The notes below the pieces were generated by a model. The model worked only from the letters and a program-made list of their open reading frames with translations. It was not told the DNA's origin and ran no database searches. This document shows, piece by piece, positions 834 through 50,700 of a stretch of DNA of 64,000 nucleotides (within the stretch, counting starts at the first letter, position 1; each line of letters begins with the position of its first letter). This stretch comes from Macrostomum lignano (taxonomy: Eukaryota), in NCBI GenBank assembly GCA_002269645.1, contig NIVC01003614.1, positions 1-64,000 on the forward strand, in the 5' to 3' direction. Made by a program: the position numbers and the translations under genes.

Positions 834-3800
834 ATGTCTTTTCCTTGCATTTCTTGTGGAGTTATACTCGCCAGCTCAGCTGAACAGCGAGAGCATTATA
901 AAAGTGAATGGCACAGATATAATCTGAAAAGAAAAGTAGCTAATCTACCCCCCATTCCTATTGATGAGTTTAATTTGAAAAAGACATTGTTTGCTAAGTC
1001 AGATTATGAGGCTCACAATCCAACTGGGAGTGGTGGAGAAGAGAAATCTAAAAAGAGCTTGTAAGTACCTCAAGGCTTGATTCCTAATTTTAATTTTAAT
1101 TTATTTTTAAGCAAACATTTAACAAAAAAGCAAGGCTTATCAATATCATTTAGAATTAAAAGATATTTATATATTAGCCCTTCCTCTATTTATTGAGAAG
1201 GCTTAGGTTTAGTATAATAAATTGCAGTCTGTAGACCATTATAGGCCTATCCAAGCAAGCATGACAAACCTTAGTGATTTAGTATATTTGGATATAAATT
1301 CCTAGATAATAAATTTAAATATGGCATTATCTATTATGATTATGAAGTTAGAAACCTTTCTAGGTTATCATTATCAAAATTATACAAAAAGACTTTATAT
1401 TCTAAGCAATAATAATTTTTTAAAGTCTAGGCCTACAATTAGGCCTAGGCCAAATGTAATTGTCAATTCATTTTTAAAAGTATTAAACATTATATGCCAC
1501 TATCAGAAAGGCCAAAGATGTCTAATGTATACCAGAGTTTTTTTGGCATTCTTTCATTTTACAATCCCCATTCCTAGGCACTTTCGTTATACGATCCCTA
1601 TGTAAAAGACACAGTGAAAGAATATAGACACAAAAGACTAGAACATATCCATCAAAGAGTCAAAGTCACTGCACTAAGGCAGTTTCAAAAGCTGTCTATT
1701 TTGAAGGCAACCAAACAAAGCCTGGACAAGAGTCTTCGCAAGAACAGTATAGGAGCCTCCCTATATTCACTTTCATTATACAATCGTTTAAATGGAGGAA
1801 GTGTATTGAAAGGGATCGGATAACAAAACTTAGGCTTTTCATCAATTTCGTAATATGATCCTTTAAGTTAGAAATTTTTTTGCAGGGGATCGTATATCAA
1901 AAGTGAAATTTGATATCGTAGGCTACTAATTATATATGAAGTAAAAATAGTTCATACAACTTGTTCGATGCCGCCTGACACCCCCTCACTTTTGTTTTAT
2001 GATCCCCTTACAGTATGGAGAGTATTGTTTCATGCTATTGGGGATCATATAATGAAAGTGAGGGGGGTAAAAAATAGATGAATATCATATCATATTATAT
2101 ATGATATGATATGTGAATTGTATAGAACGACCTATGAGACTTCTTTTTATTGGCCATTGCTGAAATTTTTACAAGGTGTTTTTTTGCATGTTAGGTACAC
2201 AATCCCCTCCAAACAAATTTTGCCTTGAGGGATCGTATTACAAAATTGATGAAAAGCTTAAGTTTTGTTATCTAATCCCTTTCTATACATTTCTTCCATT
2301 TAAATGATTAAATGCTTTTGATTTTCTATAATAGTGATCATATATCCAATCTTACTAGATTTTAGACAATATTAGATCAATTTGTGCATATTACTGCACC
2401 TGGTCCTGTTCATTATAATTTTGACTTTTTTCTACATTTTTTATGCTAGCCCACTGGTTTAACTATAATCGCTATAGATTTTCTTAGTTCTTGACAGAAA
2501 GCTATTTTTCCCTATTGCTTTATGGTTATTAATTTATATAAATAACTCGAGTTGCAAACCTATGCAGTACACACATGCAGCTCTTACTTTTGACTTAGCT
2601 GCAGGGGCTCTGTGTGTCCAGAAACAGCGAGGCGTTGCCACCCCTAGCGACATACATGTAGCCCAAGCTGCAGTCTATTCTATTTTTTTTATTAGAGGCA
2701 GGGGGTTGTGTGTACCCTATCGCACTTTAAGCGATATGGGCACACAACCGGCGAGAGGCATTACTGCCCATTCCGCCAACTCCCCTGAGCAGGCACACAA
2801 GCGCGCGGATACATACGCAGGCACACACTCACATAGGAGTGTACAGCAGCCCTAACTTTATTTTATCGTTAGGCATGTACACTTCATTGCACCTTGGGGG
2901 TTGGCTCTCAAGGTCATTAATTGCACAAGCGGAGCCAAGCTGAGATTCCAATTCAGCCCCAAATTAATGTGACTGCACTTGGAATTGAGCCTGGGTCGCG
3001 GCACACCAGAGCAGCTGCGCTACTGCTGGGCTACGGCCCCCTCGCAGTCTATTCTAGGATGCATGTGCATTTTGTGTTACACATGCGGATAGCTTTACAC
3101 AGGTTGTATAGCGGCCAAGGCGCAATCAATCCCAGGTCTGAATGTACCTTGGCACCATAATAGAGATGCATTAGCAAGTTTACCCCTGTAGATCCTGTAA
3201 ATTGTCTTGCTTCGCGAATGATTAAAAAGTCATAATAAAAAAACTTTCGATTGGCATTTTAATTTTATCGAATAGACTTAGTCTGTCCTCCTGGAATTGT
3301 GCACTTTGTCCTTCAGCCCCAATCCCCATGCCCGCTAATCCGCAGCCCTACTGCTCCGCCTGTCACAAGAAATTCTCCAGCGCTAAAGCTTTCGAAAATC
3401 ACGTTGCTTCGAAGAAGCACAAGCAGCGCGAAGCCGAGCAGCTGGAGCAGCGCGAGACGCCTGGCCGCTCCGACTCGCCCGATTGGCTCAGCGTTGACGG
3501 CGACTCTGACTCAGACTCGGGCGAACTCGATGGCGAGTCTCCACTCGGCCAGGAGGAGTGCCTGTTCTGCCCGAATGTGGCCGCCAGCCTGGAGGCCAAC
3601 TGCGCGCACATGCTGCGCGAGCACGGGTTCGCTCTCCCCGACCCGGACCTGCTGTCCGACCTGGAGGGCCTCATCACTCTGCTAGATTATAAAGTTGGCG
3701 TCGGGCGCGAGTGCCTCTGGTGCCACGGGGCCAGACGATTTGACAGCGTGCGAGCGGTGCGCAGCCACATGCTGGACAAGGGCCACTGTCGGTATAACCT

Positions 3801-5056
3801 GGCCGGGGAGCACGCCTTTGATCTTGCCGACTTCTACGACTATAGCAGTCTGGGGGTGAGCAGCATCAGGGTTGGGATTGAGTGCGGATTGGGATCATTA
3901 GATGGGATCAGATTAGATGAGATCGGGTTAGATGGGTTCGGGTTAAATGGGATCAGATGAGATGGGATCAGATTAGATGGGATCGGGTTAGATGGGTTCG
4001 GTTTAGATGGGATCAGATGAGATAGGATCAGATTAGATGGGATCGGGTTAGATGGGATCAGATTAGATGGGATCGGGTTAGATGGGATCGGGTTAGATGG
4101 GATCGGGTTAGATGGGATCGGGTTGGATGGGATCAGATTAGATGGGTTCGGGTTAGATGGGTTCGGTTTAGATGGGATCAGATGAGATAGGATCAGATTA
4201 GATGGGATCGGGTTAGATGGGATCGGGTTGGATGGGATCAGATTAGATGGGTTCGGTTTAGATGGGATCAGATGAGATGGGATCAGATTAGATGGGATCG
4301 GGTTAGATGGGTTTGGGTTAGATGATATCAGATTGGATGGGATCAGATGAGATGGGATCAGATGAGATGGGATCAGATTAGATGGGATCAGATTAGATGG
4401 GATAAGGTTAGATGGGATCGGGTTAGATGGGATCAGATTTGATGGGAAAAAGATCAGATTAGATGGGATCAGATTTGATGGGAAAAGATCAGATTAGATG
4501 GGATCAGATTGGATGGATCCGATTAGATGGGATAGGATTAGATAGGATAGAATGAAATGGGATCAAATTAGATTTGATCAGACTGGATGACATCAGTTTA
4601 GATGCGATGGGATCTTATTAGTATTGCATAATCTCGGGCAGAATTTTCAAGCAGAATTCCTCTGCTTGCCGATCGGATCCCCCAGCTCGATCCCAACGCC
4701 GGCGAAGACGACGCCGACTCAGGCGAAGAAGACGCGCCAACCGATCTGGAGACATTCGAGCTGGTGCTGCCGTCCGGCGCCGTTGTCGGGCACCGCTCTC
4801 TGATGCGCTACTACAGGCAGAGCCCGGCCCCTCCCGGGCGGTGGCCCTGCCTGCGGCCGGCGGCAGCCTGCAGCATCAGCGCCTGCTGGCTCAGTACAGA
4901 TCCATTGGCTGGCACGGCCCGACCCGCGGCCAGGCCGAGGTGGCCACCCTGCGCGATCGGGCCTTCGTGCAGCGGCATCGGCAGCGGGCGGCTGTGCAGC
5001 TCGGCTTGGGCGCCAATCGGCTGCAGAAACACTTCAGGGATCAGAATCCCAAGTAG
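834..5056 (+). CDS. ZNF622: Cytoplasmic pre-60S maturation zinc-finger protein ZNF622/Rei1. Exons 834-1060, ~3276/3282-3855, 4686-5056 (1-nt frameshift near 4835)
   Basis: N-terminal CxxC...EQREHYKSEWHRYNLKRKVANLPP; second finger CSACHKKFSSAKAFENHVASKKH; CLFC...HMLREHGF; CLWC...HMLDKGHC; ELVLPSGAVVGHRSLMRYYRQ; C-terminal LLAQYRSIGW...KHFRDQN. Donors GTAAGT (1061) and GTGAGC (3856), acceptor CAG (4683-4685). The exon-2 acceptor is uncertain. Confidence 0.9.
1576..2315. mobile_element. Degenerate foldback/MITE-like element built from a ~20-bp motif in alternating orientation
   Basis: ~85-bp inverted repeat 1782-1868 vs 2226-2312, inner inverted pair ~1981-2009 vs 2040-2068, recurring motif GGGATCRTATWAYRAAAGTG. 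No TSD found. Confidence 0.55.
2683..3043 (-). mobile_element. tRNA-derived SINE (family B), full length, with 13-bp TSD
   Basis: Minus-strand head GGGGCCGTAGCCCAGCAGTAG (A-box-like) and GGCTCAATTCC (B-box-like). A8 tail (T run 2683-2690). GCAGTCTATTCTA at 2670-2682 and 3044-3056. Confidence 0.8.
3870..4620. repeat. Pentamer-based satellite (GATGG/GATCA/GATTA; ~15-bp higher unit) in a ZNF622 intron
   Basis: Tandem GATGGGATCAGATTA variants starting ~15-25 nt after the donor at 3856. Confidence 0.95.
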
Positions 5057-5468: not shown

Positions 5469-7035
5469 ACATTGCACCGCACTGTTTTCGGTGATGCTAA
5501 GAAATCTTCGCACTGTTTTGTTTTAAATTTCTGTTTGCAGCAGAGTCCCATCGCACCGAGCGAAGTGCAGCCATCCAAGTAATTAGTTTCTGCAGCTTTT
5601 AGATTAGCATGCATACAAGGTGACTAGGGGGATTCGGAATGCCTTAAGGAAATGGGATCTCTCTCTCCAGACAGCCTGGTTTATGAGGACCCGACGGTAG
5701 GGGGGAAGAGAGGTGACAGGCTTATTTCCGCCCAGCCTTCTCGTTTCCACTTCTTTCGGTTGCTATTGGCAACTTGAAAAAGATTGGGTGATTATAGAAA
5801 CGGAGCGAACTGGCACTTTAATTACTGAGGCCTGCCTTGCCTGCTGTCCCAGTTCCCGGTCCGGGTCGTCTTGACAAATCATAAAACACCCGCCTTCTTC
5901 TTCTGTCTCCCCCCCTCGAGTCAGTCTTTATGCACCTGCACGTCACGCCACCTACCCTCCTCCCCTCTCTCGATTATAAAACTGTGGCTTGCATGAGCTC
6001 TCGAAGTATTCGTTTTTGATAATAAAAAAATCCGTAAAAAATTCTTTTGATTTTGTTTGTCAATAAGAAGCAGTAGAAGTTTTCATGTTGCTATCTCGAA
6101 TGCGGTAAGTTGGAACAGTAAGTTTGCTATGTTGGTTGTTGGTTGGGACTCGTACTATCCTAGTATAAAGACAAACAACAAGGCCTTTTTTAATGACAAG
6201 CCCCAACCAACACTGAATTCGCGGTACCCACCCAGTGCCCGAGTCTGGTAGAGAATGAATTGAAAAAGAGTTTGACCAGGGACCTCTGAATACACTTGGA
6301 CTGGTAACCAGTAACCTAAAAGTTGTAGCAGAATTCACTAATTTATAGAGCATAACTTGTTTTCATAATTTTCATATTTTTCATTATCTAAGCTATAAAC
6401 ATAAAAAACAGTCATTCGCGCGAGAGCTCTGGGATGGAGGGGCATCATAAAACCGAAATATCATAACTCCGAATGTTTTAGCAATGTCCAATGCTATTTT
6501 GGTTTTTCTAGTTATTATTTTTGCACGAATTCAAACAGTCCATGTGCATCCAGAGGTCCCTGAGCTGGCGCAGCGAGCAGATCGTGAGAAGCAAATTGCA
6601 GGAGAAGAGATTGCGAAGAGCTGACAATGAAAGAGTGCAAACGGAGCAACGCCCCTACCGTGCACAGCTTATAAATTAGACATGCAAAACCCATCATACA
6701 AACTGCTTCTCTGTTAAATTATTTCATCTCGAGCTATTCTTCTGCGTGAGTTAACAACAATTTATTAGTTACCTTCACTTGTTATTTTGTAATGCGAGAC
6801 TTCTCATGTGCAACAGTTTGTGCTTAGCTTGGAGTGTCAAAAATAGAGTTAAAAAACAGATTTGATTTCAACTTACCGGTAGATTAGATAAACTGTTCAA
6901 TGTTATAAATTTCGCTTTGTAACTGGAATTCCTGTGACAACACTAAATTTGATTGAGGAAGCTTGTTTGTCACGTGTCGGTTGATTCTGTTGACCGTGTT
7001 TTTGCACCGCTTGTCTGTTCTGTAGGAATGTGTAC

Positions 7036-7037
<2 letters not shown>

Positions 7038-7092
<55 letters not shown>
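7038..7092. repeat. (GT)n microsatellite
   Basis: Direct reading. Confidence 0.95.
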
Positions 7093-7094
<2 letters not shown>

Positions 7095-7294
7095 CACAGG
7101 CATGCGCTTGTATTGTGCTTTGCGTGAGTCAGACATTTTTATGTGAAACTTTCTATGTGAAAATTAACTGTGAAGATTAGCTACCAACACTGCCGTGCCG
7201 CTGCTCTTTAAAAAACCTCTTTATTACATGAAAGACTTTGCAATGTCTTTTGCACTGCTAGGCCACCGCCTTTACCACACATCCTTAGTTCCTG

Positions 7295-7630
7295 CGCCAG
7301 CCTCTCAGATCCTCAGTTGTTAATTTATTCTCCCAGATCCTCAATTGCCAAGCTGTTGTCCCAGATCCTCAGTTGCTGGGCCAGCCTGCCAGATCCTCAG
7401 TTGCTGGGCCAGCCTCCCAGATCCTCAGTTGCTGGGCCAGCCTGCCAGATCCTCAGTTGCTGGGCCAGCCTCCCAGATCCTCAGTTGCTGGGCCAGCCTC
7501 CCAGATCCTCAGTTGCTGGGCCAGCCTCCCAGATCCTCAGTTGCTGGGCCAGCCTCCCAGATGCTCAGTTGCTGTGCCAGCCTCCCAGATCCTCAGTTAC
7601 TGTGCCAGCCTCACAGATCCCCAGTTGCCA
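7295..7630 (+). repeat. 28-bp minisatellite CAGATCCTCAGTTGCTGGGCCAGCCTCC upstream of the first ALAS coding exon
   Basis: About 10 tandem units. Explains the spurious N-terminus of ORF 7373-8389. Confidence 0.95.
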
Positions 7631-7747
7631 TCCCCACCTTACACACATCTGGGGCTCATATTGGTCAGGTCTAGCTCAGCATTGGGGATATTTAATCCAA
7701 GCATTTTCCCACAAGTCGCAGTCCCGCCCGCCCGCAGCCCGGCAGCC

Positions 7748-10700
7748 ATGCTGTCCTGCCCGTTTCTCAGCCACCTGCCGAGCGGCCTCATCCAGTCCCG
7801 GCCCTGGTCTCTGCTGCGCTTCGCCCAGCGCTGCCCCGTGATCGGCAAGCACATCCAGCGGGCCATGACAGCCGGCGTTGAGGAATCTACGCAGTCGCAG
7901 CGACATCAGCAACCGCCGCCGCCTTCGTCAATGTCTGAGACGAAGAAGTGCCCGTTTCTCAGCGGCCGCCTAGCTGCTAGCGACGCCGCCGTCTGCGGCC
8001 TGTCGCCGCCCAGCGAGTGTCCGTACAGCCGCATGGCCGGCCGGCCGCTGACCGTCTGCTGTATGGACGAGCAGCAGGCGGCTCCAATGCCAGCCGAGCC
8101 GCTGGTGCCGCAGGCTGAGCCCCCCAACCTCTACAACTACAAGGCCCGCTGCGAGGCCCAGCTGCAGCGGAAACGCGACGATTACAGCTATCGGGTGTTT
8201 CGCAAAGTGAACAGGCGCGGCCCGAGTTTCCCCCTGGCCGAGGAGCACACGGGCGGCAGGAAGGACATCACGGTGTGGTGCAGCAATGACTATCTGGGCA
8301 TGAGCTGGCATCCCGTGGTGCAGGTATTGGCAATTTCTGCTTCTAGTAGGGATTGTTGTCTAGTTAGTCTTCTCGTACGAGTACAATAAATGTATGAAAG
8401 TAGATCCTGAGGTGTGATGGGGGTAGAAGGGTAAGATGTTAGAGGCTGAGAGAGTCGGTTGGGGGGAGAAGTAGGCTGAGACAATCGGGGGAGATGTAGG
8501 CTGAGAGAAACGGGGGAAAAGTAGGCTGAGAGATTAGGGGGAAAAGTAGGCTGAGAGAAACGGGGGAGAAGTAGGCTGAGAGAAACGGGGGAGAAGTAGG
8601 CTGAAAGAATCGGGCGAGAAGTAGGCTGAGAGAAACGGGGGAGAAGTAGACTGAAAGAATCGGGGGAGAAGTAGGCTGAGAGAGTCGCTGGAGAAGTAGG
8701 CTGAGAGAATCGGGAGAGAAGTAGGCTGAGAGAGTCGCTGGAGAAGTAGGCTGAAAGAATCGGGGGAGAAGTAGGCTGAGAGAGTCGCTAGAGAAGTAGG
8801 CTGAGAGAGTCGCTGGAGAAGTAGGCTGAGAGAGTCGCTGGAGAAGTAGGCTGAAAGAATCGGGGGAGAAGTAGGCTGAGAGAGTCGCTAGAGAAGTAGG
8901 CTGAGAGAGTCGCTGGAGAAGTAGGCTGAGAGAGTCGCTGGTGAAGTAGGCTGAGAGAGTCGCTGGAGAAGTAGGCTGAGAGAGTCGCTGGAGAAGTAGG
9001 CTGAGAGAGTCGCTGGAGAAGTAGGCTGAGCACAGAAGATCAGCGGTGCCGATCGGTGACCGCCCACAGGAGGCGGTGATCGAGGCGGCCAGGCAGCACG
9101 GTGTGGGCTCGGGCGGCACCCGCAACATATCGGGCAACACCATCCATCACGAGGCGCTGGAGGCCGAGCTGGCCGACTGGCACGGCAAGGAGGCCGCCCT
9201 GCTGTTCACCTCGTGCTACGTAGCCAACGAGGCGACTCTGTACACCCTTGGCCAGCTGGTGCCCGGCCTGGTGTTTCTGTCCGATGCCGGTAATCACGCG
9301 AGCATGATTCACGGCATCCGCACTAGCAACTGTCGCAAGGTGAGCTGCTGCACTAACGAGTCAGTTTTAACCAAGCGTTCACGATGTTAAAACTGACTGT
9401 TCACAATGTTTCACTGCCAAAAATTCACATTTGTAAATATGCGTTCACAGTGTTGTAACCGAGGATTCACAGTTGTAACCGAGCGTTCACACTATTGCTA
9501 CATAAGGATTCACAGTTGTAACTAAGCGTTCACAATATTGCTACATAAGAAGGATTCACAGTTGTAACCGAGCGTTCACACTATTTCTACATAAGGATTC
9601 ACAGTTGTAACTAAGCGTTCACACTATTGCTTCATAAGGATTCACAGTTGTAACTAAGCGTTCACAGTATTGCTACATAAGGATTCACAGTTGTAACTAA
9701 GCGTTCACAGTATTGCTACATAAGGATTCACAGTTGTAACTAAGCGTTCACACTATTGCTACATAAGGATTCACAGTTGTAACTAAGCGTTCACAGTATT
9801 GCTACATAAGGATTCACAGTTGTAACTAAGCGTTCACACTATTGCTACATAAGGATTCACAGTTGTAACTAAGCGTTCACAGTATTGCTACATAAGGATT
9901 CACAGTTGTAACTACAGGGTGTCGACGGCCTCCTTTATATCCTTTATCTCCTTTATTATAGTTGTATTTTGTACAGTTTTGTACATTTGTGTACTTTTTG
10001 TACATTTATTACTCTCAACTGATATAATGTGCTGCATCAAAATAGTAGCAATAAATTTTTATTAACTGTCTAGCACGCCTGCAGCTACCTGTAGACCACC
10101 TGGTGCAGGTTGGTATGGATGGCCCAAGTGTCAATTTGAAGATTTTTTGCGATTTAAAGACAAAGCTACAGTCTGAGACTGAAGATCTCGCTGGTTCGGT
10201 TGTTCTTGACACTGGTACCTGTGGATTGCACACAGCAAGCCGATCATCCCATTGCAGCCATGACGCCAGTGGTTGGCATCTTCAGCAGTTTCTACGCAAC
10301 CTGTATTATTTGTTTAAAGACTGTCCAGCTCGAGTTACAGAATTCAAGCAGTGACACTGCTACAATCTACGCCCAATCAAGTTCTGTACTGTCCGCTAGC
10401 CAGAGAATTCCAAAGCAGCCAACCGAAGCACTGGAAATGCTTCCTAGCTTACTCCAGTGGCTGGCTGCAAAGAGACCTGATGATTCAGAGTCCCTCATGT
10501 CACAGCTTCGATCTGCTTGTGCTGACAAGTACTTAGAGGCCAAGCTTCATTTTTTGTCTCTATCGCCAACCTACTTGAGCCATTTTTGCGACAGTTCCAA
10601 GCTGCTGCACCAATGTTTCCATTTTTGTACGAATCTCTAGGAGAAGTGCTTCGCAGTGTCATGCTACGATTTTTGGATGCCGACGTGATGAAGAAGTGCC

Positions 10701-22368: not shown

Positions 22369-22376
22369 GCATAAAT
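22369..22376 (+). promoter_or_regulatory. TATA-like box of the neuropeptide gene
   Basis: CATAAATA ~130 nt upstream of the ATG at 22504. Confidence 0.4.
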
Positions 22377-22503
22377 ACTAGCGATTGGGCAGCTCCTCGC
22401 CACTGGAGTGCGAACGCCAGCTGGGCATTTGAGTAACCCAAGCCATCGCAGTGCAGTTGCAAATCCTGCTAAACGTTTCGAGCACGGAGAGACAACGACG
22501 GAT

Positions 22504-23442
22504 ATGACGAAACTGCTGCTACTGCTCTCGGCTGCTCTGATGGCGGTCAACTTGCTGAGTCATTCAGCCAGTGCCAAGGGTGAGAGCGTGTCTCCTTAAT
22601 TTACTCGTATTACCAAATTTGGGGTCAGACTCGAAAAATGGTTTAAGTACTAATATAATCCGCACATTTCAGACCTGCTGGACACTGATGAGCTCGATAA
22701 GGCCGACATAAACGGTGATGCATCTCTTTGGCAAGACAAAAAGCGGGCCGGAGCCTGGAACAGCGGATTCGGTAAACGTGCCGGAGCCTGGAACAGCGGA
22801 TTCGGTAAACGTGCTGGAGCCTGGAACAGCGGATTCGGTAAACGTGCTGGAGCCTGGAACAGCGGATTCGGTAAACGTGCTGGAGCCTGGAACAGCGGAT
22901 TCGGTAAACGTGCCGGAGCTTGGAACAGCGGATTCGGTAAACGTGCTGGAGCCTGGAACAGCGGATTCGGTAAACGTGCCGGAGCCTGGAACAGCGGATT
23001 CGGTAAACGTGCTGGAGCCTGGAACAGCGGATTCGGTAAACGTGCCGGAGCCTGGAACAGCGGATTCGGTAAACGTGCCGGAGCTTGGAACAGCGGATTC
23101 GGTAAACGTGCTGGAGCCTGGAACAGCGGATTCGGTAAACGTGCCGGAGCCTGGAACAGCGGATTCGGTAAACGTGCCGGGACCTGGAACAGTGGATTCG
23201 GTAAACGTGCTGGAGCTTGGAACAGCGGATTCGGTAAACGTGCCGGAGCCTGGAACAGCGGATTCGGTAAACGTGCCGGAGCCTGGAACAGCGGATTCGG
23301 TAAACGTGCCGGAGCCTGGAACAGCGGATTCGGTAAACGTGCTGGCGCTTGGAGCAGTGGATTCGGTAAACGACTTAGCGAGGCCAGTCAAGACATCCCG
23401 GAAGTAGCGGCCAACACCGAGTTTTACCTTGACCTTGAGTAG
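22504..23442 (+). CDS. Neuropeptide precursor (281 aa): signal peptide plus 19 copies of AG(A/T)W(N/S)SGF-GKR. Exons 22504-22579 and 22673-23442
   Basis: Exon 1 MTKLLLLLSAALMAVNLLSHSASAK. GTGAG donor at 22580, TACTAAT branch point, TTTCAG acceptor at 22672, phase 1 matches. Acidic spacer then KKR, 33-nt units 22747-23373 each ending Gly-Lys-Arg, acidic tail, TAG 23440-23442. Confidence 0.95.
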
Positions 23443-24227
23443 ATACGATACGATTCCGACAATGAGACACAAACTTTTAACTGCTACATGTACCAATATG
23501 CGTCTCTTAGGAACGCTTGAACCTGCTCCGGAATCTCCCAGAATGCGCCACAGAAACTGAGCCTCGAACCTTGAACACAGTGTACCTCTTTTCCCAGACA
23601 TCCTTAGCGAAGAGCTGGCGCTGTGTCCATAGGCATCAGTGGATGAACAGAAATATACAAAATTTAGTCGTAATGCATGCATGGCTTGCAAATCTTAACC
23701 CACGAGAGCAGCTGTGTTAGGTTGGTTTCCATGGCAAAATAACGCCGGTCTCGTTCACTGAAATACCCTCATTAGCTGAGCCCGACAACAACTGCCATTT
23801 TAAGCCCAAAAAGCGGCTCAGTGGGTAAGCAGAATGACAATAAGGAGGAATTACTAAAGTATCGCAGGTGCAAGTTTTCTCACGGGCCAAAGTAACTGAT
23901 GCCATGCTGTAGACATTGACGCCGTATTGTGTTGTTAGTTGTTAGAGATTGGGTAGGAAGTTTTGAGCACATCTCAGGTGTGCCACTCAGCTTGCAAGCA
24001 TTTGCAGACCCGAAAGGCTTGCGGTAAATCTCTGGCTCTATGCAGCTATTTCGGTACCCAAGAGGCACCAGTTATGGACAAGCTGATTCCCAATTCACCG
24101 CACGGTCTATGCTGTGATGCTGACTGCAATAAATCAGCCTCTGGCTTACTTCTAAACTAGACCAAGTCTGAGACAATAAAGAAAGTTTAAATTCTCTCAT
24201 TGTTAACTGTACGGAGTACGGATAACT

Positions 24228-28640: not shown

Positions 28641-44369
<15,729 letters not shown>

Positions 44370-47794: not shown

Positions 47795-50700
47795 TCAGGT
47801 GATGTGCAGCAACTTTTTGAAGGCCTTTCGGAACTCATTGTTGAATATGGTATAAATGAGCGGGTTGAGAGTGCTGTTCACGTAGCCAAGCCAGACTATG
47901 AACACCGAGATTCTCCTGTCGTAGCTGCATAGCGGGCTCTTGAACAGCTCCTCGTCGATGTTCTTCAGGCAGGCGGCCCACATGAGGTTCGAGATGAAGA
48001 ATGGCAGCCAGCATAGGAGAAACACGCCTGAAGATTGTGGTTGGATCGAATAATGCAGCACTTTTGTCATCTTTTTCAATCGATTTAGCGGCGCACCCAG
48101 AGCCACCATTGGAAAAAGATGCAACACACGATTTTCTAAGAAATGAACTGGAGGCCGGTACGGAGCGCATACTTGTCGTATTGCTAGCGCATTTTGTATG
48201 CTTTAGGGAGCGCATAGCGCTGGATGGGGTTTTGCCATAGACAAATTCGGTCGCTAATAAAGCATCAATTTTTCGAGAGCATTATTAAATACACTGGTGA
48301 TACGGACAAGTACATGTTCCTTACAGCTCATTTCTAAGAAAGTCGGGTGTAGCGTTCTTTTACTTCAGCAGCCCATGCTCTGCATTTGTTTTGTATCCCA
48401 TGGCGCTATTCCCGACAAAACAGTGATATAAGTGCAAAATAGTAGTCTTAATCGTACTTTAAATATGAGAAAGTAAAAATAAGGCAACGGACAGAGAAAC
48501 ACAATGGTAAGGAAAGCGGAATGGGAACACCTTCATTGTATATATACTCTTGGAATGCAATTTTAGTTATTTAATTTTATAATTCTAATAAATAATGTCA
48601 AGCTGAGAAACTGTCGCATTTACAGACAGCTGGTCAATCAACCAGGAATGATGGGGCTTCAGTTTCAACAGAAAAAAGGAAGCATCACAGATTGAGTCAT
48701 CAAATTAAGGATAAGACAACTCAAAATTATAGCGTAAGATTATGAAACAATTGTTCTTAGAGAGTCACACAGACTGGAGACTCGAGCTGTGTGTGTGTGT
48801 GAGGCCGTCACACAGACAGGAGTATGAGGCTGTGTGAGTGTGGGTGAGGCTGTCATACAGACAGGAGACTGAGGCTGTGAATCAGATTGTCACACAGACA
48901 GGAGTCTGAGGCTGTGTTAGTGGATGAGGCTGTCATACAGACATGAGACTGAGGCTGTGAATCAGATTGTCACACAGACAGGAGTCTGAGGCTGTGTTAG
49001 TGGATGAGGCTGTCATACAGACATGAGACTGAGGCTGTGAATCAGATTGTCACACAGACAGGAGTCTGAGGCTGTGTTAGTGGATGAGGCTGTCATACAG
49101 ACATGAGACTGAGGCTGTGAATCAGATTGTCACACAGACAGGAGTCTGAGGCTGTGTGAGTGGATGAGGCTGTCATACAGACAGGAGTCTGAGGCTGTGT
49201 GAGTGTGGGTGAGGCTGTCACACAGACAGGAGTCTGAGGCTGTGTGAGTGTGGATGAGGCTGTCACACAGACAGGAGTCTGAGGCTGTGTGAGTGTGGAT
49301 GAGGCTGTCACACAGACAGGAGTCTGAGGCTGTGTGAGTGGTTGAGGCTGTCACACAGACAGGAGACTCGGACTGTGCGAGTAAAACATCAAATTGAGAC
49401 AGATAGCTCAGTCAGGGATGGTGCCAGTGAAAGACATTCCTTCACGGTAAGCACCCCTGTCAAGCTAAGGAACTCAAACGAACTTAAAAAAGGCAGAGGC
49501 GGGGCTACTCACCGCAGACTGCAGTGCCAGTTGATTCCGGAGAAAAATGATCAGTACAAAAATTCAGACAATAAACTGATAAGTGCGTCAGTTGGAAGGA
49601 AGCTATTTTACAAGCTATCAGACAAACTTGCATAGTTATAACTGAGCATCGACTTCTGCCTATTTCAAGCTAATTTCAAGGTGTCCGTATTCTAAACTTT
49701 GCCTTGCAAAACGCTAAACAAGAGTCTCTTGGAGCAGCAACAGTTGAAAGTTTCCACTTTCACGGACTATCGTTGCCGTCTGCGTACTCAGATGCCTCCA
49801 GTAAACTCGGGTACACCCTCTTCGCCTCTCCCTGTGACTCGACTTTCCTGCCCTTTTTGCTAGATTGTCTATGGCCCAAAACCAAGCGGTGAAACCATCG
49901 ATCGCGCTTGCCCATGGACCCTTCGCGCAAGGGTGGACACTTTTCAATGTTGCTGAGTGCACTTCAATAACCTGTAGCCTAGTGGTCAGAGCGTCGGACT
50001 CACGACTGAAAGGTCGGGGGTTCGATTCCCGATCCCACAGGGACAATTTGCCAGCATTAGCTGGGGTAATTGAGGGTGTGTGTGGCGACCCCCCCCCCCC
50101 AGTCCCAACCAGGACTGAACAGCCGTACGCAGCCTTCAGATGCCCCGCGCAATCACTGCGGCTAAGCTGTCCGTTGCAAATTTGTCGCTGAGACCAGTCG
50201 GCTGGAGAGAGGACGGGCAGACGTGCGGCCCAGGTCCCTCTCTCGGTCTTTCAGTGGCCGCTTAGGCTATCAACAAAATTCCACTTTGGATCTTTGAAGA
50301 CAGCTTCAAGATGTTGAATAGACATGAACTTTTGCAGGATGATTCTGGGCTGTCTGGCGCAACGCCTTCGCCGACATTGTCCTTCAGCCAGCGCTGGGGC
50401 AACTCAGCCCATTCCGCTGAGTCCTGAGCACATACAAGCGCGCCAATACTGTAAGCAGGCACGCACTCACACACGCTCACACAGGGTGTACTGCAGCCCT
50501 TTGACTCTCTAATCGTCAGGCATGTACACTCTGTGTCCCTTCCGTGCCCACGAGCCATAAACGAATGCGGCCGCAAACGAAATCAAGCCAAGGGTCATGG
50601 GGCGAGAGTCAGACACTTCTCAGCTGAGCTGCTCTGCCCCGTGACAGTTTCCATTGTAGCAGTACATGTAAGCTCTAAGTTGACACGGAATTCGCCTTTT

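Follow-up and report, generated by a model that had tools for sequence, protein, structure and literature searches.

The DNA analyzed here is a 64,000-nt stretch of the Macrostomum lignano genome (GenBank assembly GCA_002269645.1, contig NIVC01003614.1, positions 1 to 64,000 of the forward strand), which is referred to below as the window and numbered from its first letter. Its + strand carries, at positions 22504-23442, a gene with two coding exons that is predicted to encode a precursor of many copies of a short, C-terminally amidated peptide; unless another strand is given, all coordinates below refer to the + strand. The spliced coding sequence comprises 846 nt and 281 amino acids, from the ATG at 22504-22506, which is the earliest in-frame ATG downstream of a stop, to the TAG at 23440-23442. 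Coding exon 1 (22504..22579, 76 nt) ends in phase 1 and specifies Met1 to Lys25 together with the first base of Asp26. A 93-nt phase 1 intron (22580..22672, GTGAGA...TTTCAG), bounded by a canonical GT at 22580 and AG at 22671-22672, separates it from coding exon 2 (22673..23442, 770 nt), which runs to the TAG. In order, the predicted spliced protein consists of MTKLLLLLSAALMAVNLLSHSASAK|DLLDTDELDKADINGDASLWQDKKR, 19 repeat units and LSEASQDIPEVAANTEFYLDLE.

Exon 1 contributes a predicted signal peptide, MTKLLLLLSAALMAVNLLSHSASA (22504-22575), in which n-, h- and c-regions can all be distinguished: Lys3 lies in the n-region, the hydrophobic core LLLLLSAALMAVNLL spans 15 residues with a mean Kyte-Doolittle value of 2.51, and alanine occupies positions -3 and -1 of the predicted cleavage site (ASA|K). 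The start of exon 2 (22673..22746) encodes an acidic N-terminal propeptide, (K)DLLDTDELDKADINGDASLWQD, with eight acidic and five basic residues, which ends in a KKR cleavage site directly before the first unit. In the array proper (22747..23373) a 33-nt unit is repeated 19 times in tandem, every repeat specifying an octapeptide followed by Gly-Lys-Arg, and the array is succeeded by a second acidic propeptide at the C-terminus, LSEASQDIPEVAANTEFYLDLE, which contains six acidic and no basic residues and occupies 23374..23442 together with the stop codon.

Tandem Repeats Finder reports the array at 22747-23372, with a period of 33, 19.0 copies and 95% matches. On translation, 17 units read AGAWNSGFGKR, unit 14 reads AGTWNSGFGKR and unit 19 reads AGAWSSGFGKR, so that G-K-R closes every one of the 19. 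The units vary at seven nucleotide columns, five of which are third codon positions, and in the coding frame 17 of the 19 variant cells are synonymous, against 1 and 5 in the other two + strand frames. One antisense frame reaches 16, a score explained by the coincidence of its third positions with those of the sense frame. The mechanical list of open reading frames (ORFs) omits the coding frame because that frame offers no ATG, GTG or TTG after the preceding stop. For the mature amidated products, the predicted [M+H]+ values are 808.3736 for AGAWNSGF-NH2, 838.3842 for AGTWNSGF-NH2 and 781.3627 for AGAWSSGF-NH2.

Support for the gene model comes from public protein records, retrieved by an exhaustive HMMER search in which exon 2 served as the query against 1.84 billion representative proteins. 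One match (P0029, UniProt A0A1I8HFI7) is a 68-residue M. lignano entry named 'Secreted protein'; it corresponds to the first 68 residues of the spliced prediction, is 100% identical over the stretch aligned by HMMER, and reads MTKLL...SASAKDLLDTDE...AGAWNSG, with exon 1 joined to exon 2 precisely as predicted. A second match of the same cluster (P0151, NCBI PAA72860.1/PAA73061.1) is a 90-residue 'hypothetical protein BOX15_Mlig020154g1, partial'. The junction SASAK|DLLDTDE... is present in both, and both end inside the repeat array. The annotation of GCA_002269645.1 derives from RNA-seq data assembled into transcripts with the genome as guide (StringTie/TACO), and transcripts overlapping the repeat annotation were removed before submission to GenBank (PMC5730564); such filtering may explain why the public models stop within the array. 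In that assembly two partial models represent the gene, at 6001-6363 and 6679-7038 of the contigs designated L001 and L002, with the middle of the array left unannotated. The second partial model in L001 shares the TAG stop, and across its range no + strand frame other than the coding one is open. Taken from RNA-seq-derived models rather than from raw reads, this is indirect evidence that the gene is transcribed and spliced as predicted.

When only the N- and C-terminal flanks of the array were used as queries, the search returned M. lignano models only, among them two annotation artefacts, one a frameshift-riddled model and one a read-through of the 5' untranslated region (UTR). The former (P0173, UniProt A0A1I8JQD3), from an older assembly of the species, slips between the true frame and a PEPGTADSVNV frame; the latter (P0174, UniProt A0A1I8FAM5), likewise from the older assembly, was automatically named 'RxLR effector protein'. 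P0174 nevertheless provides a weak indication of a possible upstream non-coding exon in the 5'UTR, at 22206..22253, since it matches 22206-22253 at 100% and then resumes from 22450, with splice sites unresolved in this older, error-prone assembly. A TATA-like ATAAATA at 22371..22377, 127 nt before the ATG, is a candidate core promoter element by simple pattern match and is at odds with that upstream exon. On the 3' side, the same kind of pattern match finds two AATAAA hexamers, at 24128 and 24175 (24128..24180), as candidate poly(A) signals; if they are used, the 3'UTR would measure about 0.7 kb.

An earlier note on this DNA, the original prediction, had given the start codon, the 93-nt intron, the signal-peptide exon and the stop correctly to the base (ATG 22504, intron 22580-22672, stop 23440-23442), and its list of 17, 1 and 1 unit products agrees with the translation. 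It had also described the unit differences as mostly synonymous and the coding frame as absent from the ORF track, both as found here. Splicing of 22579 to 22673, which it had set in advance as its test, is attested indirectly by the RNA-seq-derived models carrying SASAK|DLLDTDE. Its description of the gene as hidden holds for the complete frame and structure, which are unannotated, and fails for the truncated models, which databases already list as 'Secreted protein' and 'hypothetical protein, partial'.

L001 and L002, the GenBank contigs that carry P0151, provide additional genomic copies of the gene. They contain the same exon 1, the same coding sequence before and after the array and the same stop; the N-terminal propeptide sequence is identical in both, and the intron of the window copy differs from that of L001 at 1 of 93 nt. 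Their arrays hold 22 units with the frame intact, comprising 11 AGAWNSGF, 9 AGAWSSGF, 1 AGAWNNGF and 1 SGAWSSGF; for the last two, the predicted [M+H]+ values of the amidated forms are 835.3845 and 797.3577, respectively. Across the three copies (19 or 22 units), unit number therefore changes by whole units and the reading frame is kept, and neither the tryptophan, the Gly-Phe that ends the peptide nor the Gly-Lys-Arg varies in any of the 41 units that the window copy and L001 contain. The species became polyploid recently and carries a large amount of duplicated sequence (PMC5730564), and the flanks of the copies diverge by about 1.4%, which places them too close together for a selection test based on the ratio of nonsynonymous to synonymous substitution rates. 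Near-identical units, together with differing unit counts and Asn/Ser mixes, indicate unequal exchange as the mode of evolution of the array, a turnover that resembles that of the surrounding minisatellites. Under such exchange, the peptide dose per transcript is evolutionarily labile.

From this architecture, we consider it very probable that the gene encodes a multi-copy prepropeptide whose products serve, in all likelihood, as a neuropeptide or peptide hormone, and we infer its processing, amidation and neuronal expression. Following the canonical rules of the regulated-secretory pathway, the signal peptide would be removed after Ala24, a prohormone convertase would cut after each Lys-Arg, a carboxypeptidase would trim the basic residues left by that cleavage, and amidating enzymes would convert the exposed glycine into a C-terminal amide. 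Each precursor would thus yield 19 octapeptides of the form AGAW[N/S]SGF-NH2 and two acidic spacer peptides, and the octapeptides would act on a receptor as a neuropeptide or peptide hormone. A homologue of the convertase PC2 is expressed in the nervous system of M. lignano, and its knockdown by RNA interference (RNAi) is lethal (PMC4490696). Prohormones of the planarian Schmidtea (npp, spp and cpp), a member of the same phylum, likewise combine a signal peptide with KR-flanked, Gly-extended peptides, and cpp-1, which encodes V/TPGW-amide, follows the same precursor logic as the M. lignano gene (Collins et al. 2010, PMC2953531).

Several observations weigh against this interpretation. The flank searches, N- and C-terminal, matched M. 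lignano models alone and found no orthologue in another flatworm. A word search of the Schmidtea catalogue gave no GFGKR, GAW, QGW or W-x3-[FY]-GKR unit, and hence no precursor of the type GFGKR or W-x3-[FY]-GKR in a planarian (PMC2953531). At a divergence of about 1.4%, conservation of the open frame between copies is weak evidence of selection, and concerted evolution alone could account for the homogeneity of the units.

An alternative is a genuine secreted multi-copy precursor whose peptides are non-neuronal, arising in glands or reproductive tissue and acting outside the body or on a mating partner, for example as pheromones, seminal-fluid factors, defensive substances or antimicrobials. 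Flatworms are rich in secretory glands, the only functional labels on the public models are 'Secreted protein' and 'hypothetical protein', and the searchable papers hold no report of the gene's expression. However, long arrays of short, uncharged octapeptides that end in an amide and are separated by KR represent the classic form of a neuropeptide precursor, and the informative database neighbours (Wx3Yamide, kinin, allatostatin-A and pyrokinin) are neuropeptide precursors without exception, one Wx3Yamide peptide having been recovered from oyster ganglia (PMC4200219). A non-neuronal origin is therefore regarded as unlikely, and a neuropeptide or peptide hormone precursor is the preferred reading in the comparisons that follow.

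To place the peptide among known families, we compared the units with those of the HMMER matches. The top matches are precursors built of tandem x-x-[G/A]-W-x-x-x-Y-G-K-R units (P0001 at 2e-101), which are of the Wx3Yamide type; they are followed by hemipteran kinin-type and then by allatostatin-A precursors. All named members of the first group are molluscs (Dreissena, Mya, Potamilus, Haliotis and Batillaria). The Wx3Yamide family was named in oysters, where mass spectrometry of ganglia detected pQQGWHIAY-amide (Stewart et al. 2014, PMC4200219), it also occurs in scallop (Zhang et al. 2018, PMC5996578), and it is described as a molluscan, orphan family without known receptor or function (PMC8398477). 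Position-specific scoring matrices (PSSMs) were built from the units of the matched precursors, that for mollusc Wx3Y comprising 121 units. The M. lignano peptides score +4 to +7 bits on the Wx3Y matrix, -8.2 to -16.9 bits on the kinin matrix and about -15 bits on the allatostatin-A matrix. A four-unit profile combining Wx3Y and M. lignano units gave no match at database-wide E-values in a word-indexed search, which with the full precursor as query missed even the self-match, probably because the repeats overwhelmed the selection of candidates.

The features common to the M. lignano gene and mollusc Wx3Yamides are a secreted precursor with several short amidated peptides, a small residue (G or A) before the tryptophan, the tryptophan itself at position -5 (the W4 column of the 121 mollusc units) and an aromatic amidated C-terminus. 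Bivalve members also release Ala-initial octapeptides from 11-residue tandem units, such as APGWGATY-GKR and APAWQALY-GKR, and one Wx3Yamide-type member, P0073, contains QQGWHSGF-GKR. When all eight residues are permuted, 64 of 10,080 distinct orderings score at least as high as the real peptide on the Wx3Y matrix.

The case for orthology is reduced by a second set of findings. The C-terminal residue is Phe in all 41 M. lignano units, whereas 117 of the 121 mollusc units end in Tyr and 4 in Phe (e.g. QQGWHSGF and QQGWYGHF), and position 2 is Gly in M. lignano as opposed to Pro or Gln in molluscs. The N-terminal 'RLPGWxVYY' and C-terminal 'QxWSAxY-GR' peptides of mollusc precursors are not present in that of M. 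lignano. In a BLASTP comparison of the Crassostrea gigas Wx3Yamide precursor with the M. lignano protein, the repeat units alone align (6e-6), while the published C. gigas precursor aligns with the Dreissena match at 7e-11. With Trp4 and Phe8 fixed, 59 of the 180 orderings of the remaining six do at least as well as the real peptide, a fit that chance would equal; the resemblance to Wx3Yamide thus comes down to peptide length, the aromatic amide, Trp at -5 and the small residue that precedes it.

Considering these findings together, AGAW[N/S]SGF-amide might be the flatworm orthologue of mollusc Wx3Yamide, an assignment that we propose tentatively, from sequence resemblance, and hold to be possible although doubtful. 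Convergence is a serious possibility, given the dozens of spiralian families that were available to match. The M. lignano precursor works like a Wx3Yamide precursor; its membership of the family is only a lead. The original prediction had refrained from assigning a family, a caution that was justified, as the link to Wx3Yamide is weak beyond the two anchor residues. It had also pointed to partial resemblances to MIP/allatostatin-B, pedal peptide/orcokinin and buccalin/allatostatin-A, which do not stand, as the defining motifs of these families fail, and it had overlooked Wx3Yamide as the nearest family.

That the peptides are highly derived members of a classical bilaterian family, namely kinin (AFNSWG-amide), MIP/allatostatin-B (W-x6-W-amide) or allatostatin-A/buccalin, is a further alternative, and a highly improbable one. 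Its best argument lies with the hemipteran kinin-type precursors (APAFNSWG-GKR), which are the second-best group of HMMER matches (3.7e-55 to 5e-34), share the 11-residue tandem unit, agree with AGAWNSGFGKR at 7 of 11 positions (A.A.NS..GKR) and likewise possess a C-terminal pentapeptide opened by an aromatic residue and containing Asn-Ser. However, the identity derives largely from the Gly-Lys-Arg and Ala common to 11-residue repeats, and the aromatic residues are transposed, W-N-S-G-F-amide in M. lignano standing against F-N-S-W-G-amide in the insects. Kinin/leucokinin was accordingly rejected, as the C-terminal F-x-x-W-[G/S/A]-amide is absent, and the negative PSSM scores given above point in the same direction. 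MIPs are defined by a C-terminal Trp-amide with a second Trp six to seven residues upstream; the M. lignano peptides have a single Trp and end in Phe-amide, so that W-x6-W-amide is absent and membership was rejected. Although allatostatin-A precursors also score in the HMMER search, the allatostatin-A/buccalin assignment fails for want of [Y/F]-x-F-G-[L/I]-amide and its FGL-amide ending (allatostatin-A), of G-L-amide (buccalin) and of any Leu-amide. Pedal peptide/orcokinin, for which oyster pedal peptides served as the comparison (PMC4200219), was also rejected: its members have about 13-20 residues of the form xFDSI...SxFGxx and are mostly non-amidated, whereas the M. lignano products have eight residues and a Gly amide donor and lack an FDSI-type N-terminal half.

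The peptide array lies in a region dense with other minisatellites, against which its features can be judged. The window holds 35 tandem arrays with periods of 4-80 bp, which cover 34.8% of its bases and fit a genome in which simple and tandem repeats make up 15% (PMC5730564). Stop-free frames are common among these arrays and produce long spurious ORFs on both strands, so that an open frame alone carries little weight. Signatures of processing are distributed quite differently: the 22747-23373 array contains 18 G-[KR][KR] motifs in the 208 codons read, each other array contains none or one, and of the 35 the peptide array alone continues in phase from a signal-peptide exon. The remaining arrays were considered as hidden peptide genes and rejected, as their units lack G-[KR][KR]. 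That there is no gene at all, and that a non-coding 33-bp minisatellite acquired its open frame and KR motifs by chance, is hardly credible: arrays, many of them stop-free, do fill about 35% of the window, the units share 95-100% identity, a level also seen in neutral arrays, and an antisense frame has a similar synonymous bias, but here a signal-peptide exon joins in phase through a canonical intron, Gly-Lys-Arg recurs in each unit between acidic spacers on both sides, RNA-seq-derived models use precisely the predicted junction and stop codon, copies vary by whole units with the frame preserved, and the processing-site features are confined to this array.

Among the other minisatellites, a 16-bp array (21475-22034) immediately precedes the peptide gene. 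All three of its + strand frames are open, R-[KE]-RR motifs abound in it, and a 198-aa ATG ORF is listed there; it has neither a signal peptide nor Gly-dibasic units, and is probably non-coding. A 28-bp unit occurs twice in opposite orientation, about 25 kb apart, at 7281-7628 (+) and 32186-32805, and the consensus units of the two arrays are reverse complements of one another after rotation. A single 43-bp unit likewise builds two arrays, at 9423-9914 and 12098-12375.

The window also holds other exons and ORFs. An exon at 3328-3960 (+) encodes a ZNF622/REI1-type C2H2 zinc-finger protein (Pfam zf-C2H2_2 at 1e-31, and zf-C2H2_jaz) and continues directly into a 15-bp minisatellite at 3897-4608. 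Exons of 5-aminolevulinate synthase (Pfam ALAS presequence and aminotransferase class I/II) are located at 7373-8389 and 13321-13827 (+). ORFs at 10200-11582, which lie between them, have no Pfam match and are a suspected transposon remnant. At 16648-17586 (+) there is a 312-aa ATG ORF of coiled-coil-like composition, with no significant match to a Pfam family and no identical product on record. On the - strand, a long exon at 50675-51613 encodes a rhodopsin-type G protein-coupled receptor whose closest PDB structures are dopamine D4/D2 and 5-HT1A receptors (E = 1e-16), with a long Gln/Lys-rich third intracellular loop that includes a CTG/GCT triplet repeat at 50890-50964. A link between this exon, 27 kb away, and the peptide was considered and rejected, since it specifies a D2/5-HT1-like amine receptor and not a peptide receptor.

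The complete gene structure is new, and the public databases hold truncated, unnamed fragments of it. McVeigh et al. reportedly mined M. lignano expressed sequence tags in 2009; neither the peptide sequence nor the gene identifiers were found in the searchable literature, and a Schistosoma mansoni neuropeptide paper (PMC9495596) has none of the GF, FGKR and YGKR words looked for in it, although an earlier description in a flatworm survey is possible. In M. lignano, a model organism among flatworms, an amidated peptide is predicted to be abundant, and its exact masses are supplied for peptidomics. Beyond this species, the truncated models suggest that repeat filters, when applied to minisatellite-rich genomes, may systematically shorten or remove multi-copy neuropeptide genes, which resemble minisatellites there. 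The gene may be the first relative of the orphan Wx3Yamide family outside the molluscs. If orthology with Wx3Yamide is true, W-x3-[Y/F]-amide would represent an ancient spiralian signalling system, present at least in Mollusca and Platyhelminthes, and the receptor and function of the orphan Wx3Yamide system would become tractable in M. lignano through RNAi and transgenesis.

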